Below, piece after piece: positions 41,101 through 59,300 of a DNA stretch of 64,000 nucleotides. Under the pieces are notes generated by a model, which was not told where the DNA came from, searched no databases, and saw only the letters and a program-made list of their open reading frames with translations. The translations under genes and the position numbers were made by a program. The stretch is from Takakia lepidozioides (Eukaryota > Plantae > Bryophyta). Within the stretch, counting starts at the first letter, position 1. Each line of letters starts with the position of its first letter. Where the stretch lies: contig CM060733.1 in NCBI GenBank assembly GCA_030704615.1, positions 52,514,001 to 52,578,000 of the forward strand. Reading direction: 5' to 3'.

Positions 41101-42175
41101 TGCAAAATGGATTGAGATGAAAGGTGTTGTAACCGATCCAAGATCCAAATGTATGTAAGAAAAAATGGGAGAAATTATTTGGTCATCAATTATGACAAAG
41201 ATGTTATATCTGGTCATATAAATTCGTTCTATGAGATGACTCCTTAAGAAAGATGAAGAAAATGATATATTATATATTTTTTCCCATAAGAGCTAATTTG
41301 TAATGCAAGTGTGACAGGTGCACCTCATGTCCTTTTGTTGTTGCTCAGTATTGGGCGATTTCTATCTGTGGCTGTTTGTTTTAGTACCAATGCGGAAGTA
41401 GCACTATGAGTTGTTGCCTTGTGCATCAATGGATTGTGGGCATAGCAACAGCTAATTCTAGATTCTAGAGGTTTTCGTCAGTCAGTCAAAGTTGTCCCTT
41501 CGTGGCACGGAACCTGTTTGGACGTAGACGATGATGTTCAGATGATGTTCAGAAGGCGTTCGAGTATTTGGTTACATTCTTATTATATGTTTATGTTGAG
41601 AGGAAGGAGGCCAAGGGGGACAGGGGAGGGAGTGGGGGTGGGGGTGGGGCAAGGGTGTGTTTGGGTTATGATCCAATGAATGTGGTGGATTTAGTATTAC
41701 TGAATACAAAGAAAAGTGCCACATGCCCTGGATCAAACAGTGGGTTTGCTACTGATAGAATGAGAATAGGCCCCCCAAGTTTGAGTGGGCCCTGTCCGTT
41801 AGAGGATGGTCCAGGAATTAAAAAGAGGGGATATTTAGTAAGCTACACAAGGATTTGAAGAAACAACCCCTCTGTAAGGGGGTAAAAAAAAAGACGGTAG
41901 GAAGGCGACAACTATTAAATGGAGGATGGTTTAGGCATCAAATTGGGGTGAGTAGAGTATACGTATCCAGCGGTGGTTTCTAGGGGTGACATGTGTGGGG
42001 GCAACCTTCTAGAAAGGTCTACGAGAGCTTGGGGCCGCCGGCCTCAGGTATATAAAGGAGTAGAGCGCTCTCCTCTCCTACCTCTTACTAGTTACTTACT
42101 AAGTTAGTACCTATTTTAGTGGGCTCTACATAGGCATGACCCGCAAAAAAAAGATGCAAACATGAACCATAGCTA

Positions 42176-45100
42176 TCAATATACGAAGCGAGAAGTTTGT
42201 TTGTTTGTTTGTTTTGTTTTGCTTTGTAGCGTTGAGATGTCCCAAACTACGGGCCCGACACTGGTGCTTGATCCCGTTGGAAAGCCCTCGATGAGGAGGG
42301 GTGCACCGGCTTGGTCTCATGGCTTTAGGACCTACGGTGTGGGAGATACGGAATTCCAAGTACTTTTGGTCGCTGGAAATTCACAAAAAATAGCAAAAAT
42401 GGCAAAGTGGGCATTCATGGGACAATGGTTGGAGCCTCGACGGGAGAGATATCAAGGGAAAGGTCTCCGGTTCAAATCTGGTCGTAGGCTCTATTGAAAA
42501 AAATGATTAGATATGGCTTACTTCATATATTGATGCACTTGGACTTAGATGACATTGGACACTTGGGCCAACGGCACAGGCTAGCCAATGATTGAAACCT
42601 AGACGGGAGATATATCAATAAAGATTGGATATATTACGACTCAATAGTTCATGTGAAAAACTAATATGGGGCTTGACATGGGAGACGTACTTGAATACAT
42701 AGGAGATTGCACTTGGGCCTCTACATGGGAGATGAACTTGGATACATGAATAGAAGATTGCTTAGATGGGCCTCAACATAGGAGATGCATTGGGATACAT
42801 AGGAAATTGCACTTGGTCTTAGATTTCAATTCTTCACATATGGGCCAAAGGTACAAGCTACCCTAGAGGTTGCAATTGGGCCTCGACGTAGGAGACGCCT
42901 TGGGATACACATAAGATCTTACACTTGGGCTTAGATGACATTGGACACTTGGGCCAACGGCACATGCTACCCTAGTCTATCTATGAATTAAGACGATTTG
43001 TTTGTTTTGTTTTGTCATGTTGAGATGTCCCGATCCGCGAGGCCCCAACCTTGGTGCTTGGTACCGTTGGAAAGCCCTCGACGAGGAGGGGTGCACGGGC
43101 TTGGTCTCACGATTTTTGGACCTGCGGTGGAATTCCAAGTACTTTGGGTCGTTGGAAATTCACAAAATATAGCAAAAATTGCAAAGTGGGCATTCTTGGG
43201 ACAATGGTTGGAGCCTCGAGGGGAGAGATATCAAGGGAAAGGTCTCCGGTTCAAATGTACATGGGAGATGCACTTGGATACATGAATAGAAGATTGCACT
43301 TGGGCTTAGATTTCAATTCTTCACACATGGGCCAACGGCATAGGCTACACTAGAGGTCGCATATGGGCCTCGACATAAGACACCAGCCACTTGAATACAT
43401 AAGAAATTGGGCTTAGGTTACAATTCTTCACACATGGGCCTTGACATAGGAGACGATACTTGAATACATAGGGGATTGCACTTGGACTTAGATTTAATTC
43501 TTAACACATGGGCCAATGGCACAGGCTACCCTAGGCCTAGATCTCCCAAACATGAGGGTCTATAGATACATAGGGGATACATAGGGTACATGCTATCGTA
43601 GGCTCTGTGGAAAAAAATGATGAGAAATGGTACTTTTGGTCGCTGGACAATGATTGCAGCCTCGACATGAGAGATATAAAGGGAAAGGTCTCCTGTTAAA
43701 ATCTGGTCGTAGGCTCTAGGAGACACACTTGGATACATAGAAGATTGCACTTGGTCTTAGATTTTCAATTCTTCACATGTGGGCCAAAGGTACATGCTAT
43801 CCTAGAGGTTGCACTTGGGCCTCGACATAGGAGACGCACTGGGATACACAGAAGATCTCACACTTGAACTTAGATGACACTTGATACTTGGGCCCACGGC
43901 ACATGCTACCCTAGAGGTCGCATTTGGACCTCGACATAGGAGACACACTTGGATACAGAGATGATTGCACTTGGACTTAGATGACATTGGATGCTTGGGC
44001 CAACAACACTCGCTACCCTAGTCAATATATGAAGGGAGACGTTTGTTTTGTAGCGTTGAGATGTCCCACACCGCGAGGCCCCGACGTTGGTGCTTGGTAC
44101 GTTGGGAAGCCCTCGATGAGGAGGGGTGCACGGCCTTGGTCTCATGATTTTTGGACCCGCCGTGTGCGAGATATGCAATTTCAAGTACTTTGGGTCGCTG
44201 GAAATTCCCAAAAAATAGCAAAGTGGGCCGCTTCTTGGGACAATGATTGGAGCCTCGACACGATCGCATATCAAGGAAAAGGTCTTCGGTTCAAATCTGG
44301 TCATAGGGCTCAGTGGAAAAAAAAATGATTAGACTTAGATAACATTGGACACTTGGGCCAACGGGACAGGCTACCCTAGAGGTCACACTTGGGCCACGAC
44401 ATAGGAGACGCACTTGGATACATAGGAGATTGCACTTGGGCTTAGATAACATTGGACACTTGGGCCAATGGCACAGGCTACCCTAGAGGTCGCACTTGGG
44501 ATTAGAGATAGTGGACAATTGGCCCAACAGCACATGCTACCCTAGAGGTCGCATTTGGGCCACGACATATGAGACACACTTGGATACATAGGGGATTGCA
44601 CTTGGACTTAGGTGACACTGGACACTTGGGCCAACAGCACGGGCTACCCTAGTCAATATATGAAGCGAGACGTTTGTTTTGTTTTGTTTGTTTTGTCACA
44701 TTGAGATGTCCCAAACCGCAAGGCCCTAGCGCTGGTGCTTGATACCGTTGGGAAGCCCTCGACGAGGAGGGGTGCACGGGCTTGGCCTCATGATTTTTGG
44801 ACCTGCGGTGTGGGAGATGTGGAATTTCAAGTACTTTGGGTTGTTGGAAATTCACGAAAATAGCAAAGTGGGCATTCTTGGGACAATGGTTGGAGCCTCG
44901 ACATGAGAGATATGAAGGGAAAGATCTCTGGTTCAAATCTGGTTGTAGGCTCTCTGGAGAAAAAATGATGAGATATGGCTAAAAGGAATTTCAAGTATTT
45001 TTGGTTGCTTGACAATGATTGGAGCCTCGACATGAGAGATATCAAGGGGAAGGTCTCCGGTTCAAATCAGGTTGTAGGCTCTGTGGGAAAAAAATGATTA

Positions 45101-45877: not shown

Positions 45878-47170
45878 AGAGAACAGGGGACGGTGGCCCT
45901 GGTTATTTTTATTGAGAATGAGAGGAAAAAATAACATGAAGGCCATACAAGCTACCACAAATTGTTCATGCAGTAAAGCTACAGACGATCTATCACTCCA
46001 TTTCTAAGAAGGCAGATGCAGAGCGCAAGAGGGGCAGAGCTGATTGTGCACGGGAAGGTCGATCAGCGTTTGGAGCGGAGTGAGTCCAAGTTGAGGACTG
46101 CTTTTGCTTTGGAGCTGCGATTCTTGCGGTGGCGCCAGTTGATGTCTTCGTCCACCTCGAGAGAAGACAACCACAGATTAGGCGAACCCCCAGCCTGCTG
46201 GAAGGTGGGAGGTCCAGGTAGTACCAGACTCGGAAAATCCCGAGCAGACGACCCCACCCCTTCCCCAAGACTTGTTGAAATTCGCAACGAGGGTGTCATG
46301 TTTCTCCTCAGAGCATCTGCGCAAATCTGAAAGCAGCACCCCCCAAGCTTTTTTGCCTTCAATTAGCAGTTCACAATAAACTGGATGCAAGGTGGCTGAA
46401 TATGAAACCACGGCGTTAGAGAAGACACAGTTGCATCTGTTCTTCCATAGATGCCATAACGTGATTGCTCGAAGATACCCAAAAAGGGCAATTCGATCAA
46501 GTAACATCAGAATTGATATTTAGCAAGTGTATAACTAGATTTGTGGCTGGGACAGAATTCCAGGCCGCATAGAAGGATCTGACTTTGGACCAGATTAGTT
46601 GAGCAAAAGCACATAAGAATAGACAATGTTCAAGCGTTTCGGAGAACCCTCAAGCACAGACTTTGCAGTTGCTTTGGTCCTGTCTGTATGCTCCCAGCGG
46701 GAGAATCCTGCTAGAGACTCTCCACAAGAATCCAGTCATTTTTCCTGATCTGGCTTTGAGCCAGACATCTTTCCAAATAAGATTCCAGTTAGAAAAATTG
46801 GGAAGAATGTAAGCCCACTTGTCCTGCCATTTGGCAGAAGGAATCCTTTTATCAAGGATGCAGCGATAGCTGATACGAGCAGTATAGCCGAAGAAGGGAA
46901 TCCTGCCCGGCCAGTGCCATTCACCAGGATCAAATGGGAGGTCCGCCACAGGAAGATTGTGGAACCAAACGAGGGTTTGTGAAGACAGCCAGTGATAAAG
47001 GTCCGTTGTTGGAGAGGGGATGGGGTCAATAGCACCTGTAAGAAATCCAAGAGAGTTAACTTGAAATGATAGACCTCTTGCCAATTTTTTCACGACAATC
47101 CCACAGGTGAGCAGTTCTTCTGTAGCCTTTCCAAATAATAAAAGAAAACGAAATAACGGCAAGCTTATCA
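45878..47170 (-). mobile_element. L1-type LINE 3' fragment (zf-RVT region)
   Basis: WKDVWLKARSGKMTGFLWRV...CKVC*GFSETLEHCLFLC..AQLIW and LWHLWKNRCNCVF; AATAAA near the 3' end. Confidence 0.8.
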
Positions 47171-50010
47171 TGCATCCAATCGGGAGGCAGGGGGTAAAGC
47201 AGGAAAGTTATTAGTTATCCCAGCACTCGTTCACTGTTCACGGTCTTGCAGATGGCCGCGTGCCTTTTGGCGGCTACTCCAGGACCCAACATCATCTTCA
47301 TGGCTCTTCCATGGACCCCACGCGTCCCTTGTTTCCTCTGCACTCTTCCGTGTGAGGTTTTTTTGGGTTCTTTTTTTAAACTTGTAGGTAAGCGGACAGA
47401 GGTTGGCTGCCCTCCTCAGACCCATCAACAAGCAATTCCCTTTTGAACAAAAGAGGGGAATGGCCCTGCAACTCATTATCTGTCTTGGAAAAATTCACTA
47501 AGGTTGACTTTGGAGTATGTGTATAGAAAGAGAGGGCGATTTTGCAATTGAGCTCACATGGGATTGTATGATGGAGCTGGGACAACATGACAATAGTACC
47601 CCCTTTGGCACTTCTACACTGACTCTAGGTAGATAGAAACTTCTGCCACTAAAGATACTTGTGTAAATAACTTGTCAGCAAGGCAGTACCCAAGGAATGT
47701 CCAGGCAACAGCCAAGATAATGTTGCAGTCAAGTAGGCTCTGCACACAGTCTTCAGCGTCAATCTACCGAACTTAGGAACTTGTGGTTTCCCTGTTTTCT
47801 AGTTCTTGCAAATTCTTCGTTTGTTTTATGGTTGACAGTATGCTCAGGGCATAGTACATATGGTACCTGAGAGACATATGTCCCACACAGCGTTTCTTTT
47901 AAGGTATTTACATTGTAGCACAAGTGGCGTCCTTGAGAAGCGCCTTAGGGGAGCACGTATGGCGCTGGTACAAAATACAGGGTCGAAATATGTGGCGAGA
48001 ATATGAGATCTGGATTGGGTGTTGGGCGAATGAATCTAAAACATAGTCCAAGAGGTCCTCAACTTGCCGACGTGTCCTTTCATCCCCAAAAAATGAGTAA
48101 GTGACATTCTCATTCTGTTTTGTAAACCTCTACCACCCTTTTTATCTTCATTCCTCTGCAATCACCCTTTTGCCCTCCTACACGGCCACCTTTTCCATAT
48201 ATTTATGAACTTTATCATCCAAACCACCTTACTATAGAAAAAATACAGAGGTATTGGATATTTGAATACCAAGTCCCACTAATATCAGGAGAGTCTTCTA
48301 CCTCTCAGCCAACTACACACATTACACATACTTTAAACAACAAATTCTATCAATATAGAGTTAACACATATGTATATCTATACAGGAAAATGGGCTGGCT
48401 CCACGTCCTCCCACCCTCTGGGGATAGGGCGATATCCTGCAGGTGGTTGGTGGGATCTGGCTCCTCGGTTATGAAATGCCTCCCTTCAATATGGCGACAT
48501 GTGCCTCCCTCTTCCGGCCCCTCTGGCGATTGATGGGCCCACCAAATCAGTTTTTGGCGAAATCCTTAACCCCATTTCCCTTAGCTCCTGTCGCCAGGAC
48601 CTGCGCGAGGTCGAAATCTGGCGATTATTCGCCACTAAAAGAATGGCTGGTCCCACACTTGTCCAGAGCAGGATATCACAGGAAAATAATAAATGGTGAT
48701 TTTAGTTTGACAAGGTCCAAGATTGACGGGGCTTTTAGTGTTGCTGACATGCAACACGAGAAAGAGCCAAAAAGAAAGCATAAGACGATGTTGCCGATCC
48801 GTGCCGCCTGCTCAACATTCAGTTTGCTGGCATTTATGCAGATGTCACGGTGGAATGATAGCTGGTGCAGCACGAGCAGTCGGCGGTGTAGAGCAAGGCT
48901 CGTGCAGCACGAGCAGTCGGCGGTGTCGAGCAAGGCTCGTGCTGCACGCACCACTGCGAGATGATCACTCCTTCGGTGCCACGCTCTCGGGAACGGGACC
49001 CTCCACCATTGCGGCGTGCCGCGTGGGGGCATCCCCTTCAGGTGGCGATCCCGTTATTCCCGCATACTCTCGACAGCTGGTGCTGCAAGGCAAACGCTGT
49101 CGGCTTTATGGATCGCACTCTCGTGAGTGTGATGGGATAGAATCATGCTATCAAATCAGCTCGAAGCTTTGATCGCTGACAGAATATGCGCTTACCGTGG
49201 ACGTCACTAGTGGTACTGCATGACATGTAGTTGAGGATTTCGGAGGATCGAAGTTTATAGTTTATACGTGAGAAGGACTCGAGGCTTCGTGAGGAAGACG
49301 AGATGGGTCTGGACAACTAGGCACTCCAGTTTCTGGAATCCGATTAGAATCTGGACCGATGCTGAATGATGCATACTCCTTGTATGGGTCTGGATAGTGT
49401 TTTCGGCACTCCCTGAACCTCGGATCTCACACCTCTACTGTGCTAATTGAGTTACTCATCGAGCAGGAGTTTTGGACAGCTTCGCAAGTCAAGTTGCCTT
49501 GAAGATGATGTACCCACACCCCTCAAGCCGGTTGGATGATGATTGATTTGAATATCGCCGGTCTATTTCATGTTTAAGTGCCTTGGAGCTTCCACCTAGA
49601 TGATCTGAATGACCATCTGCATGACCTCTTATGACTCTCGTGATTATACCAGTGAGTCTGCCTGGCTTGAATCTTCACCGTAAGCAGATGGTTTATAAAC
49701 GATCGAATATCACGTTGTCAATCTCTGTTGGCTTGCACTATTAGCAGTTGGATCCTTTGACTGTCTGGGACGATCTTCACATCTATAGTCCGTCCGAGTA
49801 GTAAATGAATTAGAGTTCGGTGCTTGTTGTACATCGACGCGAGTTCCGCAGAATCGCGTTCTCGTTTCGTTCCGGAGAACGCGATATACTAGAAGGTGCA
49901 CTGCAGCTTACTTAAGCTCTTTCTTGTGGTGCTGGCAGGTTTGGAAAAATGTAGCGTCACGACGTGTTCAGTCTGGCTTACGATCAGTGATTGCAGTTGA
50001 GAGCTGATCA

Positions 50011-51988
50011 ATGGGTGAAACGTTTGATCCGATCACAGACGTGCCAACCCCTGCTGACGAAGTAGCAAGTGATCTCCTCCTGGGGCCAAACCCCTCGAGA
50101 AGCGCGGTTGTGGCAATGACGGAAGGTTATACAGTAGAGACATTGGTGGAGATGTCCGAAAAGAAGCTTATTGGGCTATTGGATGGCCTGCAGAACACGA
50201 AGGGTCTTGGATTACTTGATTACTCGCGCATTGTGAAAGCTGTCTGGTGCGAGAAAAAACATCTTTATGATGGTAGGCGAGTCAAAATTTACCTAGGCCC
50301 TCCTGCTTCCTAACAGCTCTATCGATCCTATCGACCCTTGTTGGTGGACTGTGTTGTTGTCGTTGTTGCAGGCCATCTGATAATCTCTCCACATGCTACA
50401 ATTAGCTCACAACCGGGAGACTTTGAACATATTGTTTCATTGCATTAGTCTGGCCTTCATATTTCCATAGTTCATGGTACGCACAGCGAAGAGGGATCGG
50501 AAGAACAAGGTCTGCGTTACGTAACACGCATCAGACAGCTTACATACTTCACACTGTTTTGGTGCCAATCTTCCCATGATGTGTGTGGGTCTCCTAGGGA
50601 TCATTTATATGCGGATCTAGAACCTTAAGTAGCACTTGGAGGTAGAACCAGGATCGCAGTCTCTCCATCTTAGCTGTTGGATGTATGTTATATTATTGTA
50701 TGTTTTTGGATGTCCCGAAAAAGGTTGACGGGCTGATCTTAGGCAGAGCAAGTTGGGACCATGCACGAAGGCAATTCTGACACAGATAGAACATGTTTCC
50801 GAGGGAGTTAATGGTGTCTAAATCCTTTGTCTCACAGGATGGAAGCGGAACAAGGTCATAAGCAGGATGGAAAGACTACCACAGACAGGGATGTCCGAAG
50901 AGTTATGGAGTAGGCTACCCGAGCACCTGCTGGACAGGATCTTGGCCTGCTTGCCTCTGCCAGCTCTTCTTTGCATGCGCCCTGTGTGTAAGAGATGGAG
51001 CTCCCTTTTGTCAACCCAAAGCTTCCTGGATGTTTATACAGAGGTTCCCCGAGAATCTTCGCAGCTCTTGGCAATCTTTGAGAGGGGGGAGCATGGTGTT
51101 GTCACGAATGGGTGCTTCACGTTCTGCTCCGTTTCCGAGAGGTGGTACAATATAGCATTAAGCTCTCCGCCTTTCAAAGAGAGTGATCAGTTAGCAGCAG
51201 GCGGGGGCCTAATCTGCTATGTACCACAAAACGATGGAGAAAACGAGGATTTTCTGGTGGTGTGTAACCCACTGACCAAGGCGTGGAGGGCAATCTCTCT
51301 CTCAGGACGTATTCAGATGCAGTCTCTGCTTGCCATGGCGGTGGACAAAACCACTCATGCGTACAAGGTCATTGTGACAGCCCTACTCAAGAAGGTGAAT
51401 GGGCCACGGTTAGATGCCTTTGATCTCACAACCCAGGTCTACGATTCTCTAACAAAGACATGGAAAGTTACGGGTGTCTTACCTCCCGGTCTCCTTTTCC
51501 CACTACATTCGGTTTGGTGCAACGGCTTTCTCTACGGGTGGTGCAGCAAAGCTGATCAGATATGGATCTACGACATAGATCGAGGCCTTTGGAGGGGAGA
51601 GAAAATAAAAATGCCGGATTATGCGTTGAACTCCTGCAACATGCATGTTGTGGAATGTCGAGCCCGACTTTTCTTGGTAATCGAGACTGGATACACCGGG
51701 CATAGCCCTCAAATCTGGGAGCTCGAGCCATCAAGTATGGAATGCACAGAGGTCGCTCGAATGCCTCCAGAAGTATTCGAAGAGTTTCTGGAGAAGGTTG
51801 GTGAGTTCCAATGTGTAGGATACAACGATACCGTCTGCTTCATTGCAGATGACATCCCAGATGTTTTGTTCTATCATCTCGGCAAGGAGCTGTGGCTGTG
51901 GATGTCCAGATGCCCCCAGTTTTTGGACTGGCATCCTTACGGATACGTAGGAGTTGCCTTGGAACTACGTCCAGATGTATCCGTGTAA
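50011..51988 (+). CDS. F-box/kelch-type protein with a predicted N-terminal LEAFY-like SAM domain (exons 50011-50272 and 50838-51988, 470 aa)
   Basis: F-box LWSRLPEHLLDRILACLP...VCKRW; beta-propeller motifs AAGGGLIC, VVCNPLTKAW, TQVYDSLTKTW. The G|GTAGGC donor and CAG|GA acceptor join exon 1 in frame. Confidence 0.85.
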
Positions 51989-53354: not shown

Positions 53355-56300
53355 TTAAGGTTTGGACCCTTTCACAGCTGCTTGGTTGCTTTGTGTTGTG
53401 CCAGGGCTGCCGTGGCTGAGTGACGGAGCACCACCATCAGACATTGTGGGAACCATGCCAACACGCTCAAATAGGCCATGAATTTTGTTTAGAAGAAGCG
53501 TCTGGGACGGGTCTTCCCCCCGCAAAAGCCGTACAAAATCTGGACCCTGCAACTTCTCAAATAGGAGACGCCTCTCTGACTCAGCTTCATCCAAACGCAG
53601 CTTCAAGTACCTTCAATGTGCACCACATGGATATGAGTATTACTCATCATCTAAGAGTGGAGTCAAATTAGAGAGTCTTGGCTTCCTTGACTTTGAGATG
53701 AGGAATCGGATCCTACGGCATTTTGGCAGCTGGGAGCAGGTACTGTCAAGTCCAACTAATGTATATGAATGATATCCTGCGTCTCTTTAGTGCAGAAAAC
53801 TCTTATCTGGTGCCCTGACACTTTCTCCAAGAAACAAAGAAAAGGGACAAGAGGTTCAGGAGCAGGAATCTTTGCACTGTGCGTGTAGGGTTTTGCATTG
53901 CACCTGCCGGCGTACTCTTCTTCCACTTTTTCAGCCTTGGCCGACACTATTCTTTGAAGCCCCTCTGCCTCTCGCCGGGCTTCATCAGACTTGAACTGGA
54001 ACATGTCAGCCTCCGCCTTCTTCAGCCGAACAATCGATTCCAGCTCCTCTATTTGTTGTTTCTTCCTTTGCCTGTCAAGCTGCCACAAACATGATACTAA
54101 CTCTCAATGCCAATGAGTTGCAACCCTCTTACCCTAACTACAGTCATTCCAACCTATAAGAATCACTTTAAAGTTTCTTGTCTACTAAGCATCTCACATG
54201 AGGTTAGGGCTCAATTCATGAGTGTGGCAGGTGATACTGGTCCATGAATTGTTGATAAACCCAACAGCAACGGAACTCAGTATTTCCTTTGAACTTTCAT
54301 TTTAGGCGCTCCAGAACTTTCCTTTCTTACTGCAGTAACTCCGCCGATTCAAGACTGGCAACAGAGAGAGACCAAATGTCCAGCTAGTTTCCCACAACAG
54401 TACAATGAGCTACTTAGGTGCCCTAAGCTGATGAACTTCTGTAAAAGCAGGTGCAAGGCAAAGGACTTTTTTGGATAAATAGACTCCAGGATTCATAAGT
54501 CCTCCTTATCAACTTCAACTGGCGCCTCATTAAATCCAATGCCTGAGGCCGCCCACCATCTGGAAAATGATGGGCTCCCTCCCAACTTGGTATTGCTTTA
54601 GGGAAACTACCACATGTTTTCTGTGAGAGGGTTGCCTTCACCTCTAATATACTCAAACCAATCACAAGGCTATAAAGTATTTTGAATGATACTTTACAAT
54701 ACAACAACAGGAGGTCCACACATCACAGCCTACTATTCAGCGAGGGAGGAAAGAAGTAACGGAAAGAGGGCCCACCAGAAAAAGTACAACAACTACAAGG
54801 AAAACCAAAACAACACTCACATAACACCAAATGTAGCAGAGACGGAGTGCCTTATGCAGGTAAGATGCTAAAGAGAAAGGAAGAAAGAAATTCATAACGA
54901 TCGTGGAGGCCCATAGGGCCCTAGTACAACAACACAGAGGAACCACACATGTAGGTAGGTAGGCAGAGAGAATGGAGTCACAAGACGTTTTCTTTAGCCT
55001 GATGGGTAGACAGACAGACAGACAGACATCACTCCTTCACTGACCTGTAATTCAGCCAGCTCTCTTTTCTTGTCCTCAACCTCTCGATTAGACACCTCAA
55101 GCGCAAGGCGTGCCTTCTTTAGCTGAACAGCCTTTTCTTCAGCCACACTCTCCATCTTCGCCACAGCTTCTTGCACTACATCCACCATTCGATCACAAGC
55201 TTCCTTCCTATCCAAGGGTTTTCCCTCATCCGCTTCCCCATCATTCTTATCATCGGCGTCATATTCTGCAGCAGGAGAAGAAGGGTATAAGGCTCAAGTG
55301 ATAAAGTGACGATGAGTAAATGGAATCTCCAATGAAGAGGATAAACAATTTTAAGCAAAGCTTGTGAGCATACATCCTGAATCCAGTCCAAAGAGGAGAG
55401 TGACAATAGGTGAACAGAGGGGAGAGGCGTGCTTCAATGTAAAACGTAACAGGAAAAACCACAAACTACTGATCCAGTGGCTAATATGGGCTTATTGACT
55501 CATCTAATCTAACATAATATATAGAACAAGGACAAACCTTGAAAGAAGTACTGAATCTCTTTAAATGCAGTGCTGGCATCAATCCCATTCTTCAACTTGT
55601 CAAGAAGCTCCTCACACTTCCAGTACAACTGCTTCCCAGAGGTGTCATCACTCCCACGGAATATACGACGAACACAATCGAGCTCTCTAACAAGAGCATC
55701 CCTATCCCAGAGAGGGGCACACATTTTGAAAACATCCTTGACCCATCCCAAGAGCTCTGAAACATGTCCACAGGCTCTACATCTGAAAACTATTTCAGGA
55801 GAAGTCCCCTGGCGCACACCCCCTGCCTTCAGGCTGACTCCCATGGAGATTTGCCCCCCCCTTATTGCACAATCTGAATGAGTCCAATGGAGACAAACGT
55901 CACAGCCAACCCAGCGGCAAGTGTTGGCATCAAAATCAAACTTGCTACATGCCATGCACATGCAAGCATTGCAGAAGCCACTTGTGGTCCGACAGATGTC
56001 GCACGTGCATTCATCAGCTGGGAGCTGGCTTTGGCAGGCCATGTTGCGACAACGCTTGTGGAAGAAGATCTCAACGAGCGCTGTTTGAGTCACACTGATA
56101 TCGGGATGGAGGAATGCCAGGATCCCTGTCCTCAGAGCTACAAAGATTTCCAGCTGTGTCCGGTGGGTGCGCAGTAGACCCTCAGGGGACAGGTCCCTCC
56201 GGACTTGCAGAAGCTTCTGAAGTAGTGCAAATTCCTCTCTCCGTTGCATGCTCCCTAGAATATCCCTCAGATCTGCCTGCCAGCATTTATCAAGGATAGA

Positions 56301-59300
56301 CCATGTTAAACTCTCCTCCTCCTCCATAAGCTGTCTCTGTCTGTGTCTACAGGCTAATGCAAATCAATAGTGAGCAGTTTGTTCTAATGCATCAGCATTC
56401 ACAGGCTAGATCCAGGAATAGAATCCAGCAATGTCTGTTGGTTGCCATGACTAGCCCTTATAGTAAGCCATCATCAATCTTCTAACTGGAGAAAATGTTG
56501 CTCATCAACATTATGCATTTAACTATTTCAGGATGACTAAAGCCAGGGTCAGAAGCCCATGAAGCTATTGTCAAGATTCTTTCCCCCTTTCCTTTCTCCG
56601 AGGTATGCTCTCTGGGCCCCCTGTGGATGTTATAAATGTTTCTGGTTTCTGTTCTCTCTCTTGGGCCCTTTGGGCCTCCTGTGCATGAATGTAGTAAGAT
56701 TACCATTCCTTAGCAGAGGCCGTCAGCTTAAAAGATCTGAAGTGCCTTGCAGCCTACCTGCTTGAGGCCCATCCATCTTAGGGCATCACTTGATGTATCA
56801 TGAAATGGTCATTTCCATGTTCTACCCTGTCCCATGCGCCCGTGTGCATGTTATAGAATTACTTTCTTTCTCACCTACCTTTCTCACCTACCCTATTCTA
56901 CATAGATGCTCTGGAAGGATACACTGCGAAGAACAATGGAGTGGGGTTCATTTGGATGGGGGACCAACACAATCGGTACTTCTTTATGCCGACATTGTCA
57001 ACCTCCACAAGGACACCTTTGCATCCTAGAAGGTCAACCTCAACAAAACTAAAATCAAGGTTTTCAATGGCCATGCTGATCAGAGATTCCTCCTCAACCA
57101 GCAAGAGATTGTACTCATAAGACGTTGTTTGCCGTAGCCTTGTGGCCATTGACCCCGCGCCCAGTTTGAGCGGGAACAAAAGGGACAGAACCTACCTCTG
57201 TCAGGGGCTGACGTTGGTAGTAAGACTTACCTCCATATAAAGAATTAATCCGGGTTTTCCAGATATCCTCTAGAAATCCCTTCACACAAGCATCAATCTG
57301 CTGTGTGTGATTTGCCCAAAAACTAGGCCTCAGGAGGGCCTGGGCTTTTGGCTCAGCCTCGAGACTTTCAAAGTTGGTAAACAGGGGTACAGGCACAATT
57401 CCCTTAATAGATTTGAAGAGAGCGTCTCTTTGGTGAGAGAACCCCGGACAGTGTATCAGAAAATGAATACTGTCTTCAGATTGCCCACACAACGGGAATT
57501 GCACTCTCCCTTTCCTCTCTGCTTCTGTTTGCTGTTCAAAGGTAGGCTTCCTGCCCTGAGTTTAAATTTCAGTCTAGTGCCGAGAGTGGGTAGACCCTTG
57601 AGGTCATCCAAGATGTCCTCCCCCATGTCACAGACTGGAAACAAGTTCAGGGTCAACCAGCAAGAGATTGAGGTCGTGAATACCTGGGTCTGGTTATCCA
57701 CCCACCCAAATTTCAGACCGCATCAACTGCTATGGAGAGATTGACGAAGGCATGGCTGCCTCCATACGTCTTCAGGCTAAATGCAAACAAATATACCTGC
57801 GCCAGCCCCCACCAAAAAGTGGCTCTTCAACTCAGTTTCACCCCTGCCGCCACTTACCGCTGAGTTTGGGTCACTAGTGTCCCAGTTCCCTGGTGGGAGC
57901 GAAACCTGGAACCTCTGTAATCGTCTTTCCTCCAAGGAATGCTTGGGGCAGCACTGTCACAGATTTTAGATGCGGAATTAGCGTCTGTACTGCTTCAAAC
58001 CGAGGCCATCTTCCGACTTACAATCTAAGCCCTTCCACCCATATGGCTAACAGCCCGGGCCCTCACAAACTCTAGCAGACTAAAAGACGCTGCTTTCAAG
58101 ACCTGGTTTGATTGGGTCTCTAATATTTTGAGCACCGCAGACTCTCTCTTGCTTTCCCACTGGCACAAATATAGAAACCACCCTATCCTACGAGAAAACT
58201 GTAATTCTCTCAGGGGACATTCTTGGCCCTCCATGACGACGGAATCTTAAGGCCCAATTACCTCTCTGCAGCTCTATCTCCCTCTCTTATAAGGTTGAAA
58301 ATGAAGTTAGGCATAAAACTTCCCTGAACTTGTTCCAGTCTGTGACATGGGCAAGGACCTTAAGGATGATCTGAAGGGCCTACCTACCCTTGGCACTATT
58401 AAACTCAGGGCGGGGAGCCCACCTTTGAACAATAAACAGATGCAGAGAGGAAAAGGAGATTGTAATTGCCCGATGTACAGGCAACCTGAAGACAATATCC
58501 ATTTGATACATTGTCCAGGGTATTCTCACCAGAGAGTGACCCTATTCAGGAACATCAAGAACATGCTTCCTACACCTCTGTACCAAGTTTCAAAATCTCG
58601 AGGCTCAGCCTAAAGCCCTCGCCTGTTGAGGTCTAACTTTGAGCTGCTCACACACAACAGATTGATGCTTGTGTGAAGGGCTTTCTAGAGGATATCTGGA
58701 AAGCCCGAACTAATTGTTTCATCAAGGTAAGTCACACTACTGCAGTGAGCCCCTCACATAGGTAGTGCCTATTCCCTATGTTTCCGTCCAAACTGGGCAC
58801 GTGGGGCTATGGCCACAAGGCTATGGCAAACAAAGTCTTCTGAGTACTTGGGGGTCCTCATGTTGCAGGTTGTCCCACCTACCAGTCTCTATCGGCAGAG
58901 TGTGGGAGTCCACCCCCTGTGCCTTTGTCTTGGCTTCGTCCTCCAGTTTCTTGATCTCAACTTTAGCACGCCCCATCCCGACCCATCCACTCTTCTAAAT
59001 CCTGAGTTGCTACAGATGGATGGTGGATGGAGCATCCACCATGAAAAAGTGTCAAATAGGTGGCAAGCATTGAAGAACATTCCTTCTTTCACGGTCCTTT
59101 ATATTATGAGATCCGTGGGAGATTCTATTGTCTATTTCGAGATACCCAATCTCTCACAGAGGCCTTCCATTACAAGGATCAGAAATGCATAGTTGCATAT
59201 CTGCATAACGCATTCACTCTTAGACAAACCCTTGAGCAATACTTGTTTTTAAGCTGCTTGTGGAGGGCCCCTCTCTCTTTCTTGTTTCATGCATTCTGTT

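Follow-up and report, generated by a model that had tools for sequence, protein, structure and literature searches.

Takakia lepidozioides carries, on the forward strand of contig CM060733.1, a short gene whose first exon resembles the SAM domain of LEAFY (LFY) and whose second encodes an F-box protein. This raises the question of whether the two are truly one gene and, if so, what an LFY-type domain does on an F-box protein. An earlier note, made from the sequence of the surrounding 64,000 nt (the window; positions 52,514,001 to 52,578,000), had suggested an in-frame fusion that could co-polymerise with LFY or form oligomeric SCF (Skp1-Cullin-F-box) adaptors, and had drawn a parallel with UFO, the F-box cofactor of LFY in angiosperms.

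Gene structure

The reading frame begins with an ATG preceded by an in-frame TGA 6 nt upstream, and with exons 1 and 2 joined it continues uninterrupted for 470 aa to the stop at 51988; the gene is intact, as had been supposed. Features are listed in Table 1. The donor reads G|GTAGGC after 50272, and the intron ends in a pyrimidine tract followed by CAG. The codon split at the junction is a Gly codon, from which exon 2 reads on into the 373-aa F-box ORF (50867-51988). Three open GT/AG pairs were found in the ranges examined, and only the one listed has a pyrimidine-rich acceptor, those of the other two lying within purine-rich coding sequence. Together with its conservation in other lineages (see below), this makes it highly probable that the exons are fused in Takakia at the 50272/50838 junction predicted from the genomic sequence. 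The basic patch just past the junction, KRNK in Takakia, has counterparts in the orthologues (KRRK, KRKKK, and KQKK) and is thus present in all four lineages; it may be a nuclear signal.

Table 1. Features of the SAM-F-box gene and of its surroundings, in window coordinates.
Feature	Position	Strand	Remarks
Coding exon 1: N-terminal arm and LFY-type SAM	50011..50272	+	262 nt (87 codons + 1 base); 52-55% identity to exon 1 of three other lineages
LFY-type SAM, five predicted helices, helix 1 eroded	50050..50265	+	Family profile against 4UDE; AlphaFold helices; fold match of L002
Phase-1 GT-AG intron	50273..50837	+	565 nt; same phase in all orthologues
Coding exon 2: short basic patch, F-box, beta-propeller, stop	50838..51988	+	In frame with the F-box ORF
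Basic patch, candidate nuclear localisation signal	50840..50866	+	Just past the junction; putative function
F-box motif (Skp1-binding), intact	50906..51025	+	Pfam PF00646, E=1.1e-9; SKP2 F-box matches
Kelch-like beta-propeller, putatively substrate-binding	51060..51985	+	Approximate bounds; weak Kelch_3; KIB1-4/FKB95 models in orthologues; Atlas neighbours
Two similar ORFs, about 1.8 kb apart	42162-42497 and 43981-44328		Dispersed repeat or duplicated element
Trp-rich ORF	46650-47171	-	Resembles C-terminal LINE reverse transcriptase relic; no Pfam match
Overlapping ORFs with a short repeated peptide	48443-49172		Probably internal repeat of a mobile element
OBERON/TITANIA-like gene	53756-56327 and beyond	-	PHD_Oberon E=2e-38, Oberon_cc E=8e-28

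The surroundings of the gene include several repeat-like or mobile-element-like ORFs, all of them upstream. Downstream and convergent with it is an OBERON/TITANIA-like gene, which is not syntenic in Sphagnum.

Orthologues, splicing, and selection

Exon 1 and exon 2 were used as separate queries, with the Sphagnum protein P0015 as a full-length stand-in; no record identical to the window ORF was found. The three nearest relatives of exon 2 stand at 62-66% identity, after which the matches fall to 31% and below, and a profile search agrees. One of the three is a cluster of NCBI gene models from Sphagnum jensenii and S. troendelagicum (474 aa), which NCBI and UniRef label as F-box proteins only. 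A homologue of exon 1 lies upstream of the F-box exon in Sphagnum and on the contigs L002 and L003, so that both exons, and the phase of the intron between them, are common to four lineages; the F-box exon is present on every SAM-bearing contig long enough to show it. The codon at the donor is the same in the window, L002, and L003, and in Sphagnum the donor is 16 codons later, with phase 1 throughout and the same split Gly codon from every orthologue acceptor. The in-phase junction of exon 1 to the F-box ORF proposed for Takakia is therefore borne out by its relatives.

Splicing can be followed in Sphagnum. The JGI contig L001, of RNA type, matches the genomic sequence L004 in two blocks that skip a 1.33-kb intron, and at the far end it skips a second intron as well; it is therefore a spliced transcript of the Sphagnum fusion. 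Bases 1-118 of L001 have no match to the genomic locus and are probably a chimeric assembly end, and because of this difference the called protein P0002 lacks helix 1. In the Sphagnum SAM domain itself (L004, 10001-10275) there are two 4-residue loop deletions, and the DYS..AVW helix is kept.

Between lineages, dN in the SAM domain is 0.26-0.32, with dS from 1 to saturated, close to the dN of the F-box part (0.21-0.27). The SAM domain is under purifying selection, in the Takakia lineage as in the others.

No proteins from Physcomitrium, Ceratodon, or Marchantia were returned by the relative and profile searches. This suggests that the gene is absent from them, rather than showing it, because these searches have limited reach. 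A large representative search with the SAM profile likewise gave nothing beyond the three lineages already known, except a single chance match to a repeat. True LFY scores about 28-30 bits with this profile, below the threshold of that search, so that SAM-F-box genes of greater divergence would escape it as well. The window, Sphagnum, L002, and L003-type loci showed no synteny with one another; an apparent match upstream vanished once the gene itself was excluded.

Identity of the N-terminal domain

In a single sequence the resemblance to LFY is weak. Exon 1 alone matches the Pfam SAM_LFY model (PF01698) with E=0.0056 and 17.1 bits, short of the 25.2-bit cut-off, and three of six family rows match it weakly. 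A phmmer search of PDB with exon 1 alone gave no match, and an Atlas feature search gave only leads below 0.9, two of which are other SAM families. The profile of the orthologues performs differently: searched against PDB sequences, it matches the SAM domain of GinLFY (4UDE) end to end, with E=1e-5 and 2.6e-6. This is the only significant match, and none of the other SAM domains in PDB was matched by the N-terminal-domain profile. The comparison with SAM_LFY that the earlier note had proposed thus comes out divided, with the Pfam score of the single sequence below its cut-off and the family profile finding the GinLFY domain over its full length. A SKP1-like or transposase identity for exon 1 was also considered and rejected, the only matches being weak ones to DDE models (E 0.02 or worse).

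The structural models give a mixed picture. AlphaFold gives five helices in both single-domain models, each of modest confidence (pLDDT 69 for the window domain, 66 for L002). In the Takakia copy helix 1 is eroded, with a 3-residue gap and two prolines, and the window-domain model has no SAM match in 3D, only generic helical ones. The L002 model has 4UDE as its first match both in Foldseek (probability 0.95, TM 0.53) and in VIA (Z 6.2, rmsd 3.2 over 59 residues), and LFY at row 3 in Atlas. Since Foldseek uses sequence too, the fold match is not fully independent evidence.

Overall, the N-terminal domain is very probably homologous to the LFY SAM, as first supposed. The likeness to the LFY domain (PF01698; GinLFY, 4UDE; PMC4844672) extends over the whole domain, with five predicted helices whose boundaries match, and with the positions of T72 and E81 and the hydrophobic core retained. 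The moss domain differs in its score, below the Pfam cut-off, in several surface residues considered below, and in its setting: it is joined to an F-box and a propeller rather than to the LFY DNA-binding domain, and exon 2 has no match to C_LFY_FLO.

The F-box and propeller part

In the description of exon 2 as an F-box/kelch protein, the F-box is secure. It passes its Pfam cut-off (38.2 bits against 20.5), while the kelch label is a loose one: the Kelch models are below their cut-offs, and the best propeller models, of KIB1-4 and FKB95 types, are below theirs also. All near Atlas clusters are F-box propeller proteins, the nearest named ones being HWS (At3g61590), FBX6, and At5g15710-like proteins, and judging from these matches the propeller is probably a degenerate kelch type.

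A tree with eight outgroups groups the four moss sequences together (100/100) at the end of a long stem, and none of the outgroups is a vascular-plant orthologue of them. The F-box part thus appears as a clade of its own among HWS/LCR/At5g15710-like proteins. It shares with the HWS (At3g61590)/FBX6-LCR/At5g15710/SKIP15 group an F-box followed by what is probably a degenerate kelch-type propeller, at 23-31% identity to the vascular-plant members, but is set apart by its long stem and by the N-terminal SAM exon; SAM_LFY is not listed among the Pfam domains of any vascular-plant match.

UFO lies near this same group. It has an F-box and a kelch-type propeller, as is predicted for the moss protein, which may also share its link to LFY, but UFO has no SAM domain, and no UFO was found among the matches in the homologue, profile, or Atlas-neighbour searches. 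Its contact with LFY is also of a different kind, the UFO propeller binding the LFY DNA-binding domain; UFO homologues outside the angiosperms are not well identified (10.1101/2022.06.14.495942; PMC10227421). With no UFO among the matches, and with the moss sequences in a long-stemmed clade of their own among the outgroups used, the parallel with UFO is no more than an analogy.

Residues of the polymer interface

LFY polymers are assembled through two faces: the mid-loop face contributes T72, T75, and E83, the end-helix face R112 and R116; either T75E or R112E alone yields monomers and abolishes LFY oligomers (PMC4844672). LFY numbering was transferred to the moss domain by spacing, and is thus inferred, from a single HMMER alignment, which has a gap immediately ahead of the last helix. 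The corresponding residues in Takakia are T41 (T72), T44 (T75), K52 (E83), W79 (R112), and K83 (R116). In the order window, L002, L003, and Sphagnum, the T72 position is T/S/T/T, T75 is T/S/T/M, E83 is K/K/Q/K, and R116 is K/K/T/K; the R112 position is W in all. The five residues are therefore not kept as a set. The G70 position, where G70D is the weak lfy-22 allele (PMC4844672), is Glu in two lineages, and E81 is invariant.

The last helix shows the clearest pattern. Positions 104, 108, and 112, which are basic in GinLFY (K/R104, K108, R112), are Tyr, Val/Leu/Ala, and Trp in the mosses, and the invariant columns (D, Y, S, I, A, V, W, E, K, L) cluster on this helix while G70, T75, and E83 vary. 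In place of the basic polymer face of LFY, selection has thus preserved a new, hydrophobic surface, with the mid-loop face drifting. Such a pattern speaks against co-polymerisation with LFY and favours a new contact.

Possible roles

The reading that best accommodates these observations, held tentatively at a little under an even chance, is an SCF adaptor in which the SAM taken from LFY would now serve for dimerisation or for binding a partner, which corresponds to the oligomeric-adaptor half of the original proposal. In this scheme the LEAFY SAM would have been copied onto an SCF substrate adaptor, forming a first exon of its own. Its F-box would bind Skp1, its propeller would pick the substrate, and its basic patch would make it a nuclear protein. 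The SAM would have abandoned the charged head-to-tail interface of LFY, its acidic mid-loop patch partly neutralised and the basic stripe on its last helix replaced by an aromatic-hydrophobic one (Tyr, Val/Leu/Ala, Trp) kept in all lineages. Most likely it would then use the Tyr/Trp helix to make a defined dimer or small oligomer, either with itself or with a different protein that has an LFY-type SAM. Such assembly would increase avidity or fix the geometry in which ubiquitin is transferred, and the substrate could well be a protein other than LFY.

Cdc4, Fbw7, and beta-TrCP offer a functional analogy. They dimerise through their N-terminal domains, and, as is predicted for the moss protein, they have a small helical domain just N-terminal of the F-box and a propeller at the C-terminus. 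Their D domain is however unrelated to SAM, and their propeller is WD40.

A different use of the same parts, possible but on the unlikely side, would be a ligase that caps LFY. Here the mid-loop face of the SAM would still be usable and would dock on the end-helix face of an LFY polymer. The polymer would end there because the protein's own end-helix face would be dead, like that of the single-face R112E mutant, and SCF would be brought to ubiquitinate LFY, which would thus be controlled independently of UFO. Single-face LFY mutants do still form heterodimers (PMC4844672), and in Arabidopsis LFY levels are under the control of an F-box protein (PMC10227421). The mid-loop residues give a mixed answer: all four lineages have T/S at the T72 position and three of them at T75, and E81 does not vary, but E83 is Lys or Gln in every lineage, Glu at G70 recalls the weak allele, and Sphagnum has Met at T75. 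The strongest conservation, moreover, falls on the face that this model calls dead. In its general form, early-diverging mosses would use LFY-derived SAMs as an address system, by which an F-box protein caps LFY or other LFY-type-SAM proteins and so brings them to an SCF ligase, and this too seems improbable, though not markedly so.

The hydrophobic stripe could also be put to use within the protein, which counts against the dimerising adaptor: it could pack on the F-box, the propeller, or Skp1, with the SAM acting in cis as an autoregulatory cap, or the SAM could bind an unrelated substrate or RNA. SAM domains bind proteins, nucleic acids, and lipids (PMC4844672), and a short linker of about 25-40 residues separates the SAM from the F-box. 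This linker differs between lineages in both length and sequence, which is more in line with a domain that acts independently than with a fixed contact inside the molecule, and cis action or an unrelated partner is accordingly given a low probability.

It is very unlikely that exon 1 is left unjoined in Takakia, or that its likeness to SAM is convergent, with a plain 373-aa F-box protein made from the in-frame ATG at 50867. That ATG, the low Pfam score of the single sequence, and the eroded helix 1 would be in keeping with this, but exon 1 is open and selected in this lineage, its splice sites are conserved to the codon, Sphagnum splices the equivalent intron, and 4UDE is the one match of the family profile. 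Least probable of all is a co-polymer, in which the protein would take a place in the head-to-tail chain of LFY as a unit with LFY-SAM and UFO-like parts covalently joined: this is consistent with the homology and with Lys at the R116 position in three of four lineages, but it requires both faces, and with R112 an invariant Trp, E83 changed to Lys or Gln, and no UFO among the relatives, the co-polymerisation put forward in the earlier note is unlikely.

Significance

The gene is real and conserved, and its architecture is apparently an undescribed combination of two known parts: no LFY-SAM/F-box fusion was found described in the literature searched, a scope lying mostly outside subscription journals, and in the LFY literature covered the LFY SAM is described only as part of LFY. 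The survey of the LFY family retained only proteins with an intact LFY domain (PMC6588583), so SAM-F-box genes would have been dropped from it. Type I LFY occurs, according to the same study, in mosses that do not belong to Bryopsida (PMC6588583), a distribution that the gene's apparent absence from Physcomitrium may parallel; this is offered as a lead only.

What the sequences record is an LFY SAM that moved onto a ubiquitin-ligase adaptor and was then held under selection across deeply separated lineages. The literature describes the partners of LFY outside the flowering plants as unknown (10.64898/2026.04.13.717636; PMC8742948), and for LFY turnover in mosses the gene offers a small candidate that can be tested directly. 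If the address-system reading were true, it would represent an ancient means of controlling LFY dosage without UFO, one that Physcomitrium apparently lacks. Should the gene fail as a candidate for LFY turnover, it would still show, in a clean natural case, how the polymer interface of a SAM domain can be rebuilt to serve another purpose. The domain combination may also represent a new means of assembling a ubiquitin ligase or of directing it to its target.
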